DNA from: Podarcis filfolensis
Taxonomy: Eukaryota
Reading direction: 5' to 3' (one strand)
Length of the DNA: 64,000 nucleotides
Assembly: GCA_964270895.1 (NCBI GenBank)
Contig: OZ185435.1
Under the pieces are notes generated by a model. That model was not told where the DNA came from, made no database searches, and was given only the letters and a program-made list of their open reading frames with translations. Position 1 is the stretch's first letter; each line of letters starts with the position of its first letter. Below are positions 3,914 to 56,395 of this stretch, in pieces. A program made the translations under genes and the position numbers.

Positions 3914-4283
3914 CCGCGGGTGGCGCTGTGGTCTAAACCACTGAGCCTAGGGCTTGCCGATCAGAAGGTCAGCAGTTTGAATCCCCATGATGGGGTGAGC
4001 TCCCGTTGTTCGGTCCCAGCTTCTGCCAACCTAGCAGTTCGAAAGCACGTCAAAGTGCAAGTAGATAAATAGGTACCACTCTGGTGGAAAGGTAACCGGC
4101 GTTTCCGTGCACTGAATCATAGAATCATCTGGTTCACCAGATGCAGCTTAGTCATGCTGGTCACATGATCCGGAAGCTGTCTGCGGACAAACAACGGCTT
4201 CCTTGGCCTATAGAGCGAGATGCCACAACCCAGAGTCGTCCATGACTGGACCTAATAGTCAGGAGTACCTTTACCTTTACCTT
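3914..4283 (+). mobile_element. Sauria SINE
   Basis: tRNA-like head (ggtggcgctgtggtctaaacc...gaatcccc), Sauria body and (ACCTTT)n tail; 10-bp TSD tatccttggg at 3889-3898 and 4284-4293. Confidence 0.93.
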
Positions 4284-10556: not shown

Positions 10557-12355
10557 ACACTAATGTGAGCTCCTTCTGTTCTGTGGAGTTTAGGCACAAA
10601 GCAGACTAAAATAATGTAGATTGGATTGAAGATGATTGTTTCTTATTGTTGATGGATAGATTTCTATATCCTTGACATGTCATAGTGGTTTCTTCAGGGC
10701 GGACATTAAAGTACCCTCAAAAAAGAGGAAATGCTTGATTGAAAAAAGAAGACACAGATTTGAATAAGATCTGCATCTGCTAATTTATAGAGATGCAAAT
10801 GTAAACATATTTAATTTAAAAAGAAATACAATACATGTATGAAACAGAATTGATGAAATTTGATCCCTTTCATTGGGATGGACGGAGTTAGATTTGTATG
10901 GAGAGATAATCTGTATATCATATAGTTCTGGAGTTCTATGTAGTTTGAGGACAAAGTTCCTGTTGGATTCAAATGCAATTGTGAACACTCAGCACTTCTG
11001 TGAATCAGACTCCCACTGTGTCAGGAAAGAAAATAATGAATGCCCAGGCCTAGCAATTCAGTCCAAGAACTCAGAGTGGCATAGCCAACAACCTAGTTTT
11101 CCAAGATGTCATTCACTTTCTTAATCTAAGGTGTTATCCTTGCTTTAACTGAAGTCCCCTTCCGATTCACTGCACAGTCAACCATTTTTTTACAGCAAAT
11201 CCTAGCCAACATCATTCTTTATTGAAGGAGCTTTCAATAAGCAATGCTTAACTTTACTGCTGAAAAAGGTAAATGCTGAGCACATGCATTATCTTAACAA
11301 TTTTCTATGTGGATCGATTAATTCCGGCACTTTCTATCTTCTTAGTACACAATCAATGTAAAATAACTTTGTGCCATTTGAATATGGACGCTGTTTCATT
11401 TCTATCAAAGCACATTTTAGGCCCCCTGAAAATAGAAAACAAAACAGAAGTGTAAAGAAAGTATGATACCATTTAAAAATTTAAACTAATGATACAGGAT
11501 ATGTGTGTGTGTGTTCCAATGAAGGTTAGCTGTAATAGTTATGGGGTTATTGCTCATGGCCCAGTGAATGTTAGGGTGCTATACAAATGTTGTAAGTAAA
11601 TAAAACTATTTTGGAGAGCATTTCCTTTCCTAGTGATTCTGAGAGCCTTCTGGGTGGCCCTGAGGTGTACTCTCTGAGATATCCTTATGTCTGCTCTCCT
11701 GTGAACCAAGGAAGCCCATTATAACCCGATTGTGAATATACGTGAAGACAAGCATTAACATTGATTATGTATTATGCGGTTACATGGATAATCGGAAAGC
11801 ACAATTTTATGCTCTAACTCCACCAGTGAAGCCACAGTCATGTAATAATATCACACCAGAAAAATTGTCTTCTTTCCTGATATGCTAGTAATTAAGGCAT
11901 TGGTTTCTGCTCTCTTCCTCCAGGACCCTAAACCTCAAAAGTTCTGATTCCCCGGGAAAATTAGAGTGGGTTCAAAGTGATCTCAAACATTTTTGCCTAA
12001 TCAAGCACCTCATTAAGCAACTTGAAACACTTTAGAACTGCCCTTGCATTAAATAAATTATAATAGAGAATCAGTAGTAAAGTTAGCACGATCAGGGAGA
12101 GGATCAAAGCTTTACTGTAAAGATTATTGGCCAAATGGCCCTGAATTGCAAATCCTCTCTAAATTAGGACCAGGTACAGCAACCCACACAATATAGTTCC
12201 ATACTGTTTTTCAACAAACGTCACAGAAGTTTGTGAGCAATTTCATAACACTTTGGGTGGTTTTGCATAGATATAGTAAAGGCTGGCAGCCCCAAATTTG
12301 ATTTGGTATTCTCCAATCTAGCAACTCTTTAATTATATTATTGTGTTGCTTTTTA

Positions 12356-12697
12356 AAGGTAAAGGGACCCCTGACCATTAGGTCCAGTCGTGGCCGACTC
12401 TGGGGTTGCGGCGCTTATCTCGCTTTATTGGCCGAGGGAGCTGGCGTACAGTCATATGGCCAGCATGACTAAGCCGCTTCTGGTGAACCAGAGCAGCGCA
12501 TGGAAACGCCGTTTACCTTCCCGCCGGAGCAGTACCTATTTATCTACTTGCACTTTGACGTGCTTTCGAACTGCTAGGTTGCCAGGAGCTGGGACCGAGC
12601 AACGGGAGCTCACCCTGTCGTGGGGACTTGAACCGCCAACCTTCTGATCGGCAAGTCCTAGGCTCTGTGGTTTAACCCACAGTGCCACCCGCATCCC
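12356..12697 (-). mobile_element. Sauria SINE
   Basis: Near-full body with tail aaaggtaaag; 13-bp TSD gtgttgcttttta at 12343-12355 and 12698-12710. Confidence 0.95.
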
Positions 12698-15260: not shown

Positions 15261-15586
15261 AAGGTAAAGGTGACCGACTCTGGGGTTGCGGCGCTCATCT
15301 CGCTTTATTGGCCGAGGGAGCCAGCGTACAGCTTCTGGGTCATGTGGCCAGCATGACTAAGCTGCTTCTAGCGAACCAGAGCAGCACATGGAAACGCCGT
15401 TTACCTTCCCACCAGATTGGTACCTATTTATCTACTTGCACTTTGATGTGCTTTCAAACTGCTAGGTTGGCAGGAGCAGGGACCAAGCAATGGGAGCTCA
15501 CCCCGTCGCGGGGATTCGAACCACCAACCTTCTGATCAGCAAGTCCTAGGCTCTTGTGGTTTAACCCACAGTGCCACCCACGTCTC
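15261..15586 (-). mobile_element. Sauria SINE with a small deletion near the tail
   Basis: Sauria body; 12-bp TSD ttggaatg(t/c)ata at 15249-15260 and 15587-15598. Confidence 0.93.
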
Positions 15587-16230
15587 TTGGAATGCATACC
15601 TAGAGGTAAAATAATACAAATAAATAAAATTTCTTCATTGAAACCTGCTTTTTTAAAAAAAATTAAAAGCCAACTAATTAATGAAGAAACAAAATGGAAC
15701 AGATTCAAGAAAGAGCACTTGCAAATGGGACCTAGGCCGGAAATAGACTAATCTAGCCTTCCTTACATTCTTTATTTTTCTGTTGCGTGCGCACACACAC
15801 ACACACACAACTCTTAAGGGGGGGAAATATCATTGAAAGATCAGGACATGACTAATGGATGCCTGGAAAAGAATAAGTGCAGTGTTTAGCCTGTGAGATT
15901 ATTTATTGACTAGACGTTTCTACCATAGTCTATTTTTGATTGACCTTTTGTGAAATAAAACGATTGCTTTAAGTCTGTCACTATGTTTATGAGGTTTTCG
16001 TCCCAATGATTAATGGCTAAGGAGGGCAAAAGAGCTGTTAAAGGTTTATACCATAAAAAATCTACTTAACTGTTCATTATATAAACTTATGTTGATATAT
16101 AAAATCTGCAAACTGTACTTTTTCCTTGGGCCCAATTCAAGAGACTTTTCTGGCAAAGCTGAAATTGGCCAAATGACACAAGAAAGCTCTTCATACAGTT
16201 GGTTTCCCATGTTGTATGCATGTCTTGCTA

Positions 16231-22031: not shown

Positions 22032-23281
22032 GAAATTCACTCTTCTCTGAATTTTGTAATGCAAAACAAGGTGTGCAAGGATGCATATATTAGGGGAAAG
22101 TGTATGTAAAAATACATATATTGATGAGAAAAAAACAAGTTATATTATGGAAACGTACTTGCAAAACAGTGTATATTAGTCAAAGCTTCGTACAAAAAGG
22201 TACATTACGTGTTAAATTGCTGTTGAATTTTCATGAGTTTTTTTGTTTTGTTTCTTAGGTTGCAGATTGCTGTGAAAATGTGGAGAACTGAATTTAAAAC
22301 TGGAATAATGAGAAATGGAGAGGAGAAATTGACAGATTTTGCCAGCCCTGCTTCCAAATAAACTGACTTTGGAGTTTAGTGTTAGTTACTTTTTCAAACA
22401 GAAGAAAAGAAGAGACATAGGCACCCTGCTGCAATGTCAGAAAGCAACAAAACAGTTTTCTAGCGCAACCTAAGCATTTTGTTTTCCACCCGGGTTCCAA
22501 TGAGAAAAGAACTGGTTTTGAAATCTGTATCAGTTTGCTATTCCTGCACCTCTGAGTAGATAAAGTAGCCTTTCATGCTACTATATTTCTTCTTATCCGG
22601 CATTGATGTTGTGAGGTCTGAGAATACTGATTTATCTGTTGAAAAGTTTCCATTCAAAGCTGAAATTATACTCAAAGCAGATTAAAGACGAGATGGAAAG
22701 TTTTGGAAATGTGCACAGGGGAATTGTAGCATATGGAAATTTGTTAGCTCATTTCTAACTTGCATGTTTACAAGTTCTTCCTCATTTTAAGATACTACAT
22801 TAACGAAGAAAATGCATGCACAACTGTTCTCATATGTGAATATGAAGTTTCCTTTCAAGGGAGTTATGGATTTATGGAAGCACTGATGAATGAGTACTGA
22901 ATGACATATATGGGGTCAGGTTTTCAAAGATGGGGGTTCCTTAGGGATGCCTCAAAGGTTCAGGTTCATGATACATATTTTCAGTTTCAAAACTACTAAT
23001 GCAGCAGCATTCCCAACCAAACATTTAACAGCTCATTTATTTCTTCTGATCCTGTGCAGCATAAGAAGAAGCAAATTGTTCTCATCTCTGGGTGCAAACA
23101 CTTGCCTTGTTCCAAGACCAATGACACACAGTCTACATGCTGACCTAGGAATAAACTGGGTATAGCGCCTAACAACAGTAGAAGCTGTATATAATTTGTA
23201 GGAAGAAGTAAGAGGGCAGACAGACAGACAGAAGATTGTAATCATTGGAAAGAAATTAGATGGCTGGTAATGGGTTGAAAA

Positions 23282-23627
23282 GGGACGCGGGTGTGTTGTG
23301 GGTTAAACCACAGAGCCTAGGACTTACTGATCAGAAGGTCAGCAGTTCGAATCCCCGCAACGGGGTGAGCTCCTGTTGCTTGGTCCCTGCTCCTGCCAAC
23401 CTAATAGTTCGAAAGCACATCAAAGTGCAAGTAGATAAATAGATACCGCTCCGGCAGGAAGGTAAACGGCATTTCCGTGCGCTGCTCTGGTTCGCCAGAA
23501 GCGGCTTAGTCATGCTGGCCACATGTAGTCATGTTGGCTCCCTTGGCCAATAAAGCGAGATGAGCGCCGCAACCCCAGAGTCGGCCACGACTGGACCTAA
23601 TGGTCAGGGGTCCCTTTACCTTTACCT
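23282..23627 (+). mobile_element. Sauria SINE
   Basis: Full length; 14-bp TSD taatgg(g/c)ttgaaaa at 23268-23281 and 23628-23641. Confidence 0.95.
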
Positions 23628-28195: not shown

Positions 28196-28522
28196 GGGCT
28201 TGCCGATCAGAAGGTCAGCGGTTCGAATCCCCGCAACGGGATGAACTCCTGTTGCTCGGTCCCAGCTCCTGCCAACCTAGCAGTTCGAAAGCATGCCAAA
28301 AAGTTCAAGTAGATAAATAGGTATCGCTCCAGCAGGAAGGTAAACAGCGTTTCCACGTGCTGCTCTGGTTTCGGTGTTCTGTTGAGCCAGAAGTGGTTTA
28401 GTCAGGCTGGCCACATGACCTGGAAAAACTGTTTGCGGACAAATGCCAGCTCCCTCGGCCTGTAAAGTGAGATGAGTGCCGCAACTCCAGAGTCGTTTAC
28501 GACTGGACTTAACTGTCAGGGG

Positions 28523-28523
<1 letters not shown>
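28196..28523 (+). mobile_element. Sauria SINE, 5'-truncated, tail replaced by (TA)n
   Basis: Body starts at ggcttgccgatcagaagg after a G-run; (TA)n at 28524-28560. Confidence 0.9.
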
Positions 28524-35099: not shown

Positions 35100-35459
35100 T
35101 GGGATGTGGGTGGCGCTGTGGGTTGAACCACAGAGCCTAGGGCTTGGCGATCAGAAGGTCGGTGGTTCGAATCCCCACGATAGGGTGAGCTCCCGTTGCT
35201 CGGTCCCTGCTCCTGCCAACCTAGCAATTCAAAAAAACATGTCAAAGTACAAGTAGATAAATAGGTACCACTCCGGTGGGGACGTAAACGACGTTTCCAT
35301 GCGCTGCTCTGGTTCGCCAGAAGTGGCTTAGTCATGCTGGCCACATGACCCGGAAGCTGTACGCCGGCTCCCTCAGCCAATAAAGCAAGATGAGTGCCAC
35401 AACCCCAGAGTCGTCCACGACTGGACCTAACGGTCAGGGGTCCCTTTTCCCTTTACTTT
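35100..35459 (+). mobile_element. Sauria SINE
   Basis: Full length; 11-bp TSD taaacagttct at 35089-35099 and 35460-35470. Confidence 0.95.
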
Positions 35460-51691: not shown

Positions 51692-53822
51692 TATCAAAGA
51701 TGGAGAAGTGATTATTTGTGAGATGGGATGCAACAGGAAATGGTATTACGTGCTATTAGAATATTTTATTTTATTTTCATCTGATCTGAGCCCTAGCTTG
51801 TCCTGGGTTTCAGAGGAAAAGCTGTAAAGTGAGAAGCATCATGCTCAGTCTTGTCTAATAGGATCCATCTTTTCACTTCTTTTAGCAGGAATTTTATTGT
51901 TTGGAGTCTTTTACCAGAAATTTGATCTCGTTTCTCCTTTTGTAAAAATTCAGTATCTAAGTCACAGAATGAGAAGCATCCAGTTTTTGCTTACAGAAGA
52001 AGGCAGTATCTTTGACAATATCTTTCATTCTTTATTACATGCAAGGTTTACTAAACATGATTTTAAAAAGAAAAAGGAAAAAAAGATATACAACAAAGTG
52101 TGCTTATATCACATATAAAGGAATGCATACATGATTTTGATGCCTTCTTTCTTAGTGACACTGAGAGGTGGGTATGCAGAAGATCATTATGTATTCTTCA
52201 CCATCGGTCAGTTGCTTAGTTACCAGTGAAATAGAGTACTACTAATAAAAGTATGCAGGAATGCTGGTAACATCTGAGCAGGACATCGGCCGTAGAAACT
52301 GTAGCAGCTAAGACATTTATAAACGTTGCCAAAAGGCAACTGACTTTAAAAAACAAAAATGGAAAGAGGAAAAAAGCTTGCAAAGCATTAACTTTCTTCC
52401 ATCAGTAATGTGATGTCTAGATCATCATCAACACCATTAGTTAAATGGTACTGATTCTGATGATCAGTCGTCAAATGATCCGGTGATAAATTCAGTATTC
52501 TGAGAGCATGGAGTAGCTATTCCCAGCAAGATAATATGCCGCAGTTTTATTTTAAGTACAGTTGTTGTTCAAATGGTGGCTATAGTAATTTTCTATTTGT
52601 ATAGCTCTGGTACATTTCCAAGTGCTTAATTGCTTTTAAGGATCTAGAGTTAAGAGGTACAGTTATTATACCAGTGGTGAGAGTGAAAAACAACCACCCC
52701 AGGATCAGTGAAAGTAGCATTGTCTCCAGTGAGTGCTAATTGCTCAAATTCTTGCATTCAGTTCGCATCTTGAGCCAAAGATCACAAATGAAAAAGCATC
52801 TCTTTCTTTGAAATAAAGACCGCTTGGGTGATACACTGAAGCCCATTCTGTTCTTAGCATCCTTCCGGGTAGGTGGTCTCCTTTCTTTTGTTAAGTCTGC
52901 ATCACAACTCAGATATCTGTCTGAATCTGGCAATGGCATGTCTTTTATGTATCAAGGCTGTTTCTTTTGGCAAGGAAACACTATCTGGCTGTTCTTCTGC
53001 CTTCAGATCAGGCTGTGCACATAGTGTATCAAATGTATTCTCCGCTTCTGTAGCAAAGGTCCAAAACTAGTTTGCGGTTTTTCAAAAAGGACTGCTGCGG
53101 TGCCATTCTTGAAACTCCTGTGTTTGTACAGTGAAAATATGCATTTATTTAAAACATTTTGATACTGCCCACATTCCAGGACTGTGTCGAGCATAAAAGA
53201 AATACAGATGCATACACAAGAACACATCAGATAAAACTTTAAAACAGATGAAGGCTGCAGTGCAAACCCCATTTGTCTGTTTTAAAAAACCCTTTGAAAT
53301 AAATAGGACATACTTCTGAGTAGGCATGGCTAAGATTGCACTGTCTAACTTGCACAGTTAAATCAAATAAATCCATGAAAATGTCCAGGTTAATGCAATG
53401 TTTATTTTGCTTCATGCCTAAACATTAGCGGGGTTGCTATTGTTGAGAAAGCTTTCTCCTTTGTTGATTATATTTGTGCATCTGGTGAAAGAGGTATATG
53501 GAGAAGATCCTGGGAAGATCTTAAAGAATGGGCAAGTTGATAGGATGAGGTATTTCTTTATTTATCTGGGTCCCAAGCTTTTGTGGGATTTAAAGACATA
53601 CATCTGAAGGCCTTAAGATCTTCAGAGGCCCTTCACCGGAGTTGTCCACCAAATGAAATTCAATGGGTGTTTATTAGACAGGAGACTCCTCAGTGGTAGT
53701 GGTACATTACCAGTTATGGAATGCCCTCAACACAGAGGTTCATCTGGCATGTTTGTTGTAGTCTTCTTGACCTTACAACATCCTAGTGATCTAAATAACA
53801 TTTGATATTTCTAGAGTATTAA

Positions 53823-53952
53823 GCTCCTTCATGGATCACTGCCTTGTCATGGTGAATGGGCTTGAATAACTCAGAAAAGCTATGAGCTATGCTGTGCAGG
53901 GCCACCCAAGATGGACAGGTCATAGTGGAGAGTTTTGACTAAACATGATCCA
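53823..53952 (+). ncRNA. Putative HDV-like self-cleaving ribozyme (degenerate copy)
   Basis: P1, P1.1, P2, P3 and P4 pairings, U-N-N-U-C-(G>A)-U L3 loop and C-U-A-A J4/2 all appear in HDV order; see findings. Confidence 0.6.
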
Positions 53953-54390
53953 CCTGGAGCAGGAATTGGCAAGCCACTCCAGTATCCCTGCCAAAAAAAC
54001 TCCATGGACAAAGACAACAGGCATATAAAAGTTATGATGCTGGAAGATGAGCCCCTCAGGTTGGAAGGCGTCCAACATGCTACTGAGGAAGAGCAGAGGA
54101 CAAGTGCAAGTAGATTAGGAAAGCCGAAAGGTCGCTCAGTTGCAGATATGCCTGGAAGCGAAAGGAAAGTCCAATGCTGTAAAGAAAAATATTGCATAGC
54201 AACCTGGAATGTAAGAACCATGAACCTTGGTAAGCTGGATGTCGTCAAAAATGAGATGGCAAGAATAAATATAGACATCCTGGGCATCAGTGAACTAAAA
54301 TGGACAGGAATGGCCGAATTCAGTTCGGATGACCATCATATCTACTACTGTGGGCAAGAATCCCATGAAAGAAACGAGTGGCCCTCATAG
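53935..54390 (+). pseudogene. Bov-B ORF N-terminus including APE endonuclease motifs (151 aa, truncated)
   Basis: TWNVRTM and DILGISELKW motifs of the APE family. Confidence 0.88.
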
Positions 54391-54592
54391 TCAACAAAAG
54401 AGTGGCGAAAGCTGTACTGGTGTGCAATCTCAAAAATGATAGAATGATCTCGATACAAATCCAAGGCAAACCTTTTAACATCACAGTAATCCAAGTTTAT
54501 GCACCAACATAAACTACCTGAACATGGCTACCTACCTGAATCTTATATTTTTATGTTTTCTAAGTTTTATATATAACTTACTTCAAGAGATA

Positions 54593-54942
54593 AAGGTAAA
54601 GGGACCCCTGACCATTAGGTCCAGTCATGACTGACTCTGGGGTTGCGGTGCTCATCTTGCTTTATTGGCCGAGGGAGCTGGCCTACAGCTTCTGGGTCAT
54701 GTGGCCAGCATGACTAAGCCGCTTCTGGTGGTCCAGAGCAGCGCACAGAAATGCCGTTTACCTTCCCACCGGAGTGGTACCTATTTATCTACTTGCACTT
54801 TGACGTGCTTTCGAACTGCTAGGTTGGCAGGAGCAGGGACCGAGCAATGGGAGCTCACCCCATCGTGGGGATTTGAACCGCCGACCTTCTGATCAGCAAA
54901 TCCTAGGCTCTGTGATTTAACCCACAGCGCCACCTGCGTCCC
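54593..54942 (-). mobile_element. Sauria SINE
   Basis: Full length; 14-bp TSD tacttcaagagata at 54579-54592 and 54943-54956. Confidence 0.95.
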
Positions 54943-56078
54943 TACTTCAAGAGATAGCCACCCATAAAACTTCCATTATTGGGTGTCTTGTGAATTCAGT
55001 AAGCAAGGAGGGAAAGAAGGAAGAAAAGAACCAGCAGCTTAAATTGGGCCCAGAAGCAAACAGCTGATTAAACTCTTTTACAATTGGAAGGAATGCAGTG
55101 GGTGCATTGGGCCATGCCAGTCAAAGTAATGGAAGTTGTGTTTTGGAAGCTGTATCTGAAATAATGGTAGATGCATTATCAGAAACTGATCAAAGTTTCT
55201 AAACTGCATTCAGTACATTCATAGCCATTCCTTATGGAAGCATGCCACCTAGGGATCATACTTCTGCTAGCACAGGGCTGGGGGACATGCCCCACTCTCT
55301 CTTCACTTTTCTAGGATTGCGCTTGCTGAAGCAGAGTGCCCAAAGTAAAAATGGATGGTGGCAGCCAGGAAGCTGTTGATCAGCCAGTTCGAACCTGTCA
55401 GATTTTACAGCATTTTCAGAGTCCTTGGAGCCAGCAACTTCTTACTGCTTGGTTACTCTCAGCACTATAGGGATCATTATTTATTTTATTATTACAGGTG
55501 GCAAATAGATACTGGCTCCTAGGATTATACAGTTGTCTTTCCCTCAAGCCTTATTTGTGCATTCTGCTAATGTGCAAAAAAGGGAGAGAGCCTACTTGTG
55601 AGCAGGGAGAATGGGGACAAATGCACTTCACTCTGCCCCTTCCATTAGCCACAAACTTATGGAAGCAATGGCTCATTGCTGTTATTGTGTTTTATGGCAA
55701 ACTGCTTTAAGTTTTGGGTTTTACTAAGAGGTATTAAAATATTTTTAAAAAATTTTTTGAGGCTACCCATGCAATACAGACTTCTGCATAATCAGGATTT
55801 TAAATCATATGGGAATCTTCCACAAGAAGAGGGGTGCTATGCTGTTGCAGCACCATGGAGAGTTCCTAGTGCCTAAATTGCTTTGACAAGGGTTGTAAGT
55901 AAGGACTTTTGAGACTCTGTCTCCAGTCCACTTCTCCATCTCCTTATGAAGAACTCTGGAGGGTCTTTTAAAAGGCCAGCCCCTTAACCTAGAGGCATAC
56001 TTCTCTGTGCTCCTGAATAGTGCACCCTCTGTGATATTGGACTGCTAAAGTACTATAGAAGTCACTTGGACCCTGTAG

Positions 56079-56395
56079 GTAAAGGTAAAGGACCCCTAGA
56101 TGGTTAAGTCCAGTCAAAGGCAACTATGTGGTGCAGTGCTCATCTCATTTCAGGCCAAGGGAGCTGGTGTTTGTCCACAGACAGCTTTCTGGGTCATGTG
56201 GCCAGCATAGCTAATCTGCTTCTGGTGCAACGGAACACCGTGACAGAAGCCAGAGCGCACAGAAACACTGTATACCTTCCCACCACAGTGGTATCTGTTT
56301 ATCTACTTGCATTGCTATGCTCTTGAACCGCTAGGTTGGCAGAAGCTGGGACAGAGCAATGGGAGCTCATCCCGTTGCACAGATTTGAACTGCTA
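56079..56395 (-). mobile_element. Sauria SINE, older/different subfamily, 5'-truncated
   Basis: Tail ggtaaaggtaaagg; extra central segment ggaacaccgtgacagaagccagagc. Confidence 0.85.

Follow-up and report, generated by a model that had tools for sequence, protein, structure and literature searches.

A LINE fragment and the fold at its start

The window, by which we mean the whole stretch of 64,000 nucleotides from Podarcis filfolensis that was analyzed, contains a region that shares homology with loci from Varanus and from a snake, starting at 53824-53828 and extending to about 54508. The open reading frame at 53935-54390 has 7986 homologues, one of which (P0007, 77% identical) matches the Pfam family Exo_endo_phos, the AP-endonuclease family. 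Since a close homologue of the reading frame is of the endonuclease type, and since the homology ends near 54508 and is followed by a SINE-like repeat, the locus is read as the decayed 5' fragment of a LINE (Table 1). We take the element to be BovB/RTE from recognition of its sequence, the name not being drawn from a repeat library. No other copy of its 5' end is present within the 64-kb window. The SINE-like repeat that lies directly after the fragment is unrelated to the LINE, measures approximately 350-390 bp and occurs in at least eight copies in the window, with 75-90% identity between copies.

Table 1 Features of the LINE fragment and its surroundings, and positions in 53824-53952 where the majority letter of the family differs from the window.
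Feature	Position	Strand	Remarks
Decayed LINE 5' fragment, presumably BovB/RTE-type	53824-54510	+	5' UTR and start of the AP-endonuclease domain; by homology
P1 5' strand	53824-53830	+	CTCCTTC here, CCCCTTC in most copies; family terminus
P2 5' strand	53832-53840	+	TGGATCACT, which is TGGATCAC (53832-53839) plus T53840
P3 and L3	53841-53853	+	GCC (53841-53843) and GGT (53851-53853), loop TTGTCAT (53844-53850); family GCC/TTGCCGT/GGC
P1 3' strand	53854-53860	+	GAATGGG here, GAAGGGG in the family; C53861 follows as P1.1 partner of G53846
P4 domain, long and rod-like	53862-53938	+	AACTC (53868-53872) with GAGTT (53930-53934); CTATGA (53880-53885) with TCATAG (53920-53925)
J4/2	53939-53944	+	Candidate catalytic C53939, then N-A-A
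P2 3' side as first listed	53943-53952	+	ACATGATCCA
P2 3' strand	53945-53952	+	ATGATCCA here, GTGATCCA in the family
SINE-like repeat	54588-54973	+	Directly after the LINE fragment
Other SINE-like copies	12354-12697, 15271-15587		In the window
Other SINE-like copies	3915-4282, 23252-23627, 28200-28523, 35101-35453	-	In the window
Diverged SINE-like copy	56077-56394		In the window
Majority letter C	53825		Inferred from loose-end letters; P1 U.G becomes C-G
Majority T>C	53847		67-92% of depth; neutral (L3)
Majority A>G	53849		68-98% of depth; G25 restored
Majority T>C	53853		77-92% of depth; P3 G.U becomes G-C
Majority T>G	53857		96-100% of depth; P1 mismatch repaired
Majority A>G	53876		92-100% of depth; neutral (unpaired in P4)
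Majority T>C	53893		87-100% of depth; P4 U.G becomes C-G
Majority T>C	53940		92-99% of depth; neutral (J4/2)
Majority A>G	53945		84-100% of depth; P2 mismatch repaired

A preliminary description of this DNA had proposed an HDV-like ribozyme fold at the extreme 5' end of the element. All the strands that it listed are present where it had placed them, and the elements, read from the letters, follow one another in the HDV order that it had claimed (P1-P2-P3-L3-P3'-P1'-P1.1'-P4-J4/2-P2'). P1 of the window copy forms six of its seven pairs, with one C.U mismatch and one G.U pair, P2 (TGGATCAC at 53832-53839 paired with ATGATCCA at 53945-53952) has one C.A mismatch, and A53849 occupies the position of G25, which is a G in most copies of the family. 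P1.1 consists of one pair only, G53846-C53861, beside a U.U, and this pair is G-C in eight of nine copies and G.U in the remaining one. Between C53939 and P2' there are five nucleotides, a spacing that is canonical only if U53840 pairs with A53943. The pair at the putative cleavage site is C53824-G53860 in all eight copies that reach the 5' end, and not a G.U wobble with G at +1; G53823 in the window could lengthen P1 at the cost of P1.1. The window copy has A in place of G25, its P1, P2 and P3 are defective, and the element breaks off near 54510. It is a dead fragment, and the suspicion in the preliminary description that this copy is inactive was well founded.

The terminus of the family and its majority letters

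Several kinds of data show that a very abundant repeat family indeed has its 5' end at 53824, as had been claimed for this element. The homology of independent copies starts at 53824 after unrelated flanks in two Varanus loci, one snake locus and four other loci or locus groups. The start C(C/T)CC(C/T/G)TTCATGG was found after unrelated flanks in seven distinct natural copies, namely the window, the snake Ahaetulla prasina, two copies from Varanus komodoensis, the locus L118 and two groups of ENA contigs. When contigs of two related lizards were placed on 53650-54400 at 80% likeness, the summed depth, which is a depth of contigs and not a copy number, was approximately 99 in the flank up to 53805 and 0.65-1.8 million from 53832 onwards. 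Loose ends, where the upstream letters are unrelated, accumulate at 53824 (21 and 23 contigs) and at 53826 (43 and 37 contigs), and the last two loose letters at 53826 are CC. Peptides called on the opposite strand at other loci agree with this, since 92 of them read ..KAVIHEG and then diverge into 55 different tails, and in 82 of the 92 the next codon starts with G, implying a C at 53824. RNA-labelled runs include contigs that extend across the terminus, and the ends of an RNA cannot be read from a contig. When metagenome and viral contigs were scanned with 16-mers, 128 loci matched, and of these all but L118 were discarded as chance matches.

Inverted arrangements are frequent at the 5' ends of the family. 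Bases 10-22 of the snake copy are repeated in reverse complement upstream of it (L134:24832-24856), which gives a 13-bp hairpin, the two Varanus copies face each other (L002:9789-10959), and in one lizard contig 53826 and 54045 are joined with opposite orientation of the strands.

The family majority letters were applied to the 130-nt stretch only. Nine of them differ from the window in 53824-53952 (Table 1), and six of these improve a pair or the core, three are neutral and none is disruptive. The preliminary description had attributed three of the defects of the window copy to CpG decay and had predicted the corresponding repairs (53849 A>G, 53853 T>C and 53945 A>G); all three repaired letters are the majority letters of the family, and G25 and the pairings of P1, P2 and P3, on whose presence in the family it had made its proposal depend, are restored together. 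In the natural copies the CG of L3 reads CG, CA or TG, as is typical of a CpG that has decayed. The resulting family P1, CCCCUUC/GAAGGGG, has seven Watson-Crick pairs and its 3' strand comes directly after P3'. P3 is GCC/GGC (3 bp) and closes the loop UUGCCGU, which carries the conserved U and G of L3 (the snake copy has UUGUCGU). P2 of the family, UGGAUCAC/GUGAUCCA, has 8 bp, and J4/2 begins with C-C-A-A.

The summed contig depth also differs within the element. The first 200-270 nt or so (53832-54090) are two to four times deeper than the part with the open reading frame (54092-54400), loose ends accumulate after 54012-54031, and one contig continues at 54024 into what we take to be the BovB 3' tail. 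Together, the extra depth, the loose ends and the contig joined at 54024 point to a very abundant short derivative, internally deleted, that keeps exactly this 5' end. LINEs are usually truncated at the 5' end, so that a depth bias towards this end is the reverse of the common pattern. Derivatives of LINEs that are bipartite and internally deleted, such as Bov-A, have been described (PMC5786205), and the lizard short form resembles them in being short and high-copy and in keeping the exact 5' end of the LINE. Unlike Bov-A, it is known only from contig tables.

Conservation of the fold and its rarity in random sequence

Two forms of BovB have to be distinguished in the following: type S, which has the core and is the form found in the window and in the snake, and type R, which has not. 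C53939, A53941 and G53846 do not vary among the nine natural copies compared, and the A-A of C-N-A-A is present in eight of the nine. When the pseudoknotted model was laid over these nine copies, which are about 85% identical, 92.5% of the cells were paired, compared with approximately 37% when the partners were slid. At 53869/53933 in P4 most copies have A-U, whereas the snake has G.U and Varanus has G-C, and such a compensatory series of A-U, G.U and G-C is seen in two P4 pairs. The P2 pair 53836/53948 is U-A in the squamate copies, U.G in the group of locus L135 and C-G in type R. The formal covariation that the preliminary description had looked to for support was not significant, since the observed score was reached by 95 of 500 shuffles of the nine copies. 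The failure of the score to rise above the shuffles is explained by the copies being 85% alike and each individually decayed.

Coding on either strand could in principle contribute to such conservation. On the plus strand, type S has TGA stops in the frame that is open in the type R proteins, so that the stretch is untranslated in type S, and plus-strand coding was therefore rejected as the cause of conservation in this form. On the minus strand a frame is open across the 5' UTR (53824-54287) and has been called as protein in thousands of records. This antisense frame runs straight into unrelated flanks and is therefore not a bounded gene. It has also been built into host gene models (P0107, P0126, P0127 and P0155), among them 'craniofacial development protein 2', a phosphotriesterase-related isoform in Ahaetulla prasina, and doublecortin-domain and lunapark models in Varanus.

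Type R was seen in many contigs and in 27 peptides, and we take it to be ruminant BovB. Comparison of L004:9915-10100 and L005:9860-10035 with the snake copy L134:24700-24856(-) showed that type R is shorter by 18 nt, which correspond to GTGGTGAAGGGGCTTGCG in the snake copy and whose loss removes G25, P3', P1' and the P1.1 partner. P2 and P4 are kept, and upstream the sequence continues into a different and longer 5' region. The deletion amounts to six codons and is in frame on the antisense strand, and the change that makes the P2 pair C-G also turns a plus-strand TGA into TGG and thereby opens an upstream frame. The preliminary description had made its claim for Bov-B in general, and this was too broad: the type S lineage carries the fold and type R has its core deleted, so that the statement that BovB uses a ribozyme is tenable only for the type S lineage. 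Since P2 and P4 are kept in type R despite the deletion of the core, these two helices may serve another purpose, and their retention is the strongest argument for a different role of part of the structure.

To what extent such a fold is found by chance depends on how it is described. A loose first descriptor was discarded as evidence, because it found 3374 sites in 10 Mb of random sequence (approximately one per 3 kb) and many in the window. The compact descriptor requires that J1/2 has at most 3 nt, that L3 has 7-8 nt and reads U...CG, that P3' abuts P1', that P1.1 has one Watson-Crick pair, that C-N-A precedes P2' and that P2 ends next to P3. At its middle level (at most one P1 mismatch and a P2 of at least 6 bp) it found 52 sites in 40 Mb of random sequence, and at its strict level (perfect P1 and a P2 of at least 8 bp) it found 1 site in 40 Mb; these figures serve as a guide and not as a P-value, the descriptor having been designed with the candidate already in view and without calibration on known ribozymes. 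The majority letters of the family pass the strict descriptor with the cut placed at 53824, and so does a natural copy, that of the snake (L134:24700-24831(-)), with the cut at the first base of the element or one base upstream. Neither the strict nor the middle level found a site on either strand of the 64-kb window, where the copy of the element is failed by A53849, which stands in place of G25. The fold is thus beyond chance for the majority letters of the family, and not for the window copy.

The search with the HDV and CPEB3 models of Rfam that the preliminary description had proposed gave no match: at the gathering score, and also with E up to 10, the window and the snake copy matched no HDV-clan, CPEB3, drz, twister, hammerhead or other ribozyme family. 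Folding energies of the ribozyme-like stretch as a whole are unremarkable, with MFE z-scores of +0.23 (window copy) and -1.0 (snake copy), and are uninformative because the fold is pseudoknotted. P2 is present in both the MFE and the centroid structure of the snake copy. RNAalifold on the nine natural copies recovered both of the P4 helices in Table 1 together with inner stems in a 77-nt rod, and the single-sequence z-scores of P4 lie between -0.6 and -2.2.

Candidate self-cleavage and its alternatives

We consider the 5' end of the family very probably to be a real, selected RNA fold of the HDV type, located at the exact terminus. As to its function, the reading that we favor as the probable one is that the 5' end of type S BovB is a candidate HDV-like ribozyme, which would be new for a vertebrate RTE/BovB LINE; self-cleavage is what the arrangement of the letters suggests. 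Under this reading a copy would be transcribed from an upstream host promoter, the RNA would cut itself between 53823 and 53824, immediately 5' of C53824, and the released RNA would begin at the first base of the element, after which the folded ribozyme may aid stability or translation.

The CPEB3 ribozyme has a compact core with a J1/2 of 1 nt, a 7-nt L3 reading U-U-N-N-C-G-U, a weak one-pair P1.1 and C-N-A-A before P2', and it is intronic and single-copy, with a G1.U wobble and a short P4. The core of the BovB fold, with a J1/2 of 1 nt, an L3 of 7 nt, a single G-C pair as P1.1, a C-rich P1 5' strand and a long P4 rod, is like that of CPEB3 and of L1TcRz, the HDV-like ribozyme of L1Tc. The intronic single-copy setting, the G1.U wobble and the short P4 of CPEB3 are absent from it, and the Rfam model of CPEB3 is unmatched.

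HDV-like ribozymes are responsible for 5'-end processing in R2, Baggins, RTE and L1Tc elements (PMC3774820, PMC6765202, PMC5786205, PMC3185411), and they are predicted at the 5' ends of RTE families (PMC6765202; PMC5786205 citing Ruminski 2011). Those of R2 and of insect RTE/Baggins elements act on non-LTR elements that are promoter-less (PMC5786205, PMC6765202, PMC3774820). They share with the BovB fold the position at a non-LTR 5' end, a variable P4, a P1 of 6-7 bp abutting P3' and the conserved G of L3 (PMC3774820). In these ribozymes P1 has 6-7 bp counted from the cleavage site and its 3' strand comes directly after P3', and the G in L3 is needed in the R2 ribozyme of Nasonia (PMC3774820). 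They were found by a descriptor that was later called too restrictive (PMC4035085).

The closest analogue is L1TcRz, since it is able to cleave although its +1 nucleotide is a C, the 5' strand of its P1 is rich in C and its P1.1 has a single pair (PMC3185411, PMC4035085), and its authors judged the original HDV descriptors too restrictive in exactly these features (PMC4035085). Like the BovB fold, it occupies the very 5' end both of an APE-type LINE and of the internally deleted derivatives of that LINE. The two share the C-rich 5' strand of P1, and in L1TcRz the C at +1 pairs to a G, as is seen from a reverse-primer sequence and a reverse-transcription stop at G+37. Its P1.1 is a single pair as here, taken to be G-C, and in two L1Tc clones a G at -1 can extend P1 at the cost of P1.1, in the way described above for G53823. 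L1TcRz differs in belonging to the ingi/L1Tc clade and to another host, and in measuring 77 nt with a short P4, compared with approximately 129 nt and a P4 rod of 77 nt here. L1TcRz has been shown to cleave in vitro, whereas the BovB fold is known from sequence alone. Because of these L1TcRz-type departures from the canon, searches based on descriptors or on Rfam would miss the BovB fold. The literature searched, which did not include Ruminski 2011, yielded no published description of an HDV-like fold in BovB, lizard or Anolis.

A structured 5' UTR may also have a role of another kind. It could be an RNA or DNA element that acts as an internal promoter or start-site determinant, as a protein binding site or in translation, in which case the likeness to HDV would be coincidental and the RNA would not cleave itself. 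Type R, in which the core is deleted while the P4 rod and P2 are kept, the latter with a C-G pair that is compensatory, agrees with such a role, a fixed transcription start equally predicts a sharp 5' end, and the empty Rfam result fits as well. The canonical G1.U37 wobble is missing, and the G.U wobble at the cleavage site has been termed essential, with G1 invariant, in a review (PMC8495972). Moreover, the 77 nt that form L1TcRz are reported to be capable of promoter function as well (PMC3383444). A promoter role is nevertheless compatible with a ribozyme, as L1Tc itself exemplifies, and coincidence has to account for a perfect 7-bp P1 abutting P3', a 7-nt L3 reading U...CG, a P1.1 pair, C-N-A-A and an 8-bp P2, all placed at the first base of the element, a combination met once in 40 Mb of random sequence. 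We therefore think it rather unlikely that the stretch has such a role alone and does not cleave.

That the stretch has no function at the RNA level, its pairings persisting through young relatedness of the copies or through selection on the antisense open frame, appears improbable to us. The high identity of the copies, the lack of significant covariation, and a minus-strand frame that is open over the whole stretch and called as protein so often are all compatible with it. Against this, the stretch has been kept between lizard, Varanus, snake and further hosts, the non-autonomous short form keeps exactly this 5' end, P2 and P4 show compensatory series, and the antisense frame does not end where the element does but runs into unrelated flanks. 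A ribozyme of another class was also considered, such as a variant of twister, since twister variants are present at the 5' ends of some RTE elements, for example Perere-3 (PMC8501958; PMC7761336). Perere-3 copies start with AA at the cut (PMC8501958), whereas the lizard family starts with CCCC, and with E up to 10 Rfam gave no match to twister, hammerhead or any other ribozyme family, so that this class was rejected as very improbable.

BovB is a textbook example of a LINE that has been horizontally transferred between distant animals. If the self-cleaving 5' end that we favor is true, a newly arrived copy would make a correct full-length RNA from any host transcript without a promoter, and this would also account for the retention of exactly this 5' end in the very abundant short derivative. 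If confirmed, the L1Tc-type variant of HDV with C at +1 would extend to vertebrates, which would suggest that current descriptors and Rfam models under-count the family. The role of the 5' UTR is also of practical interest, since tools for gene insertion are at present being engineered from RTE-clade elements that carry their own UTRs (PMC13708176).

Type S copies are found in contigs that share other repeats with type R contigs, and the two types therefore probably coexist in one host. Tentatively, one might go further and imagine that BovB entered genomes and spread in them as a promoter-less LINE trimming its own 5' end by an L1Tc-type HDV-like ribozyme, with C at +1 and a one-pair P1.1, that standard descriptors and Rfam have missed, and that the type R lineage later lost 18 nt of the core and acquired a longer 5' region, which would amount to a change from ribozyme-dependent to promoter-dependent expression. 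We regard this scenario as possible, though speculative. A protein assigned to a bacterium, P0254 (NCBI WP_377319332.1, Phaeospirillum tilakii, 'hypothetical protein, partial'), falls in a 90%-identity cluster of type R 5' peptides and most likely represents animal DNA contaminating the bacterial assembly.
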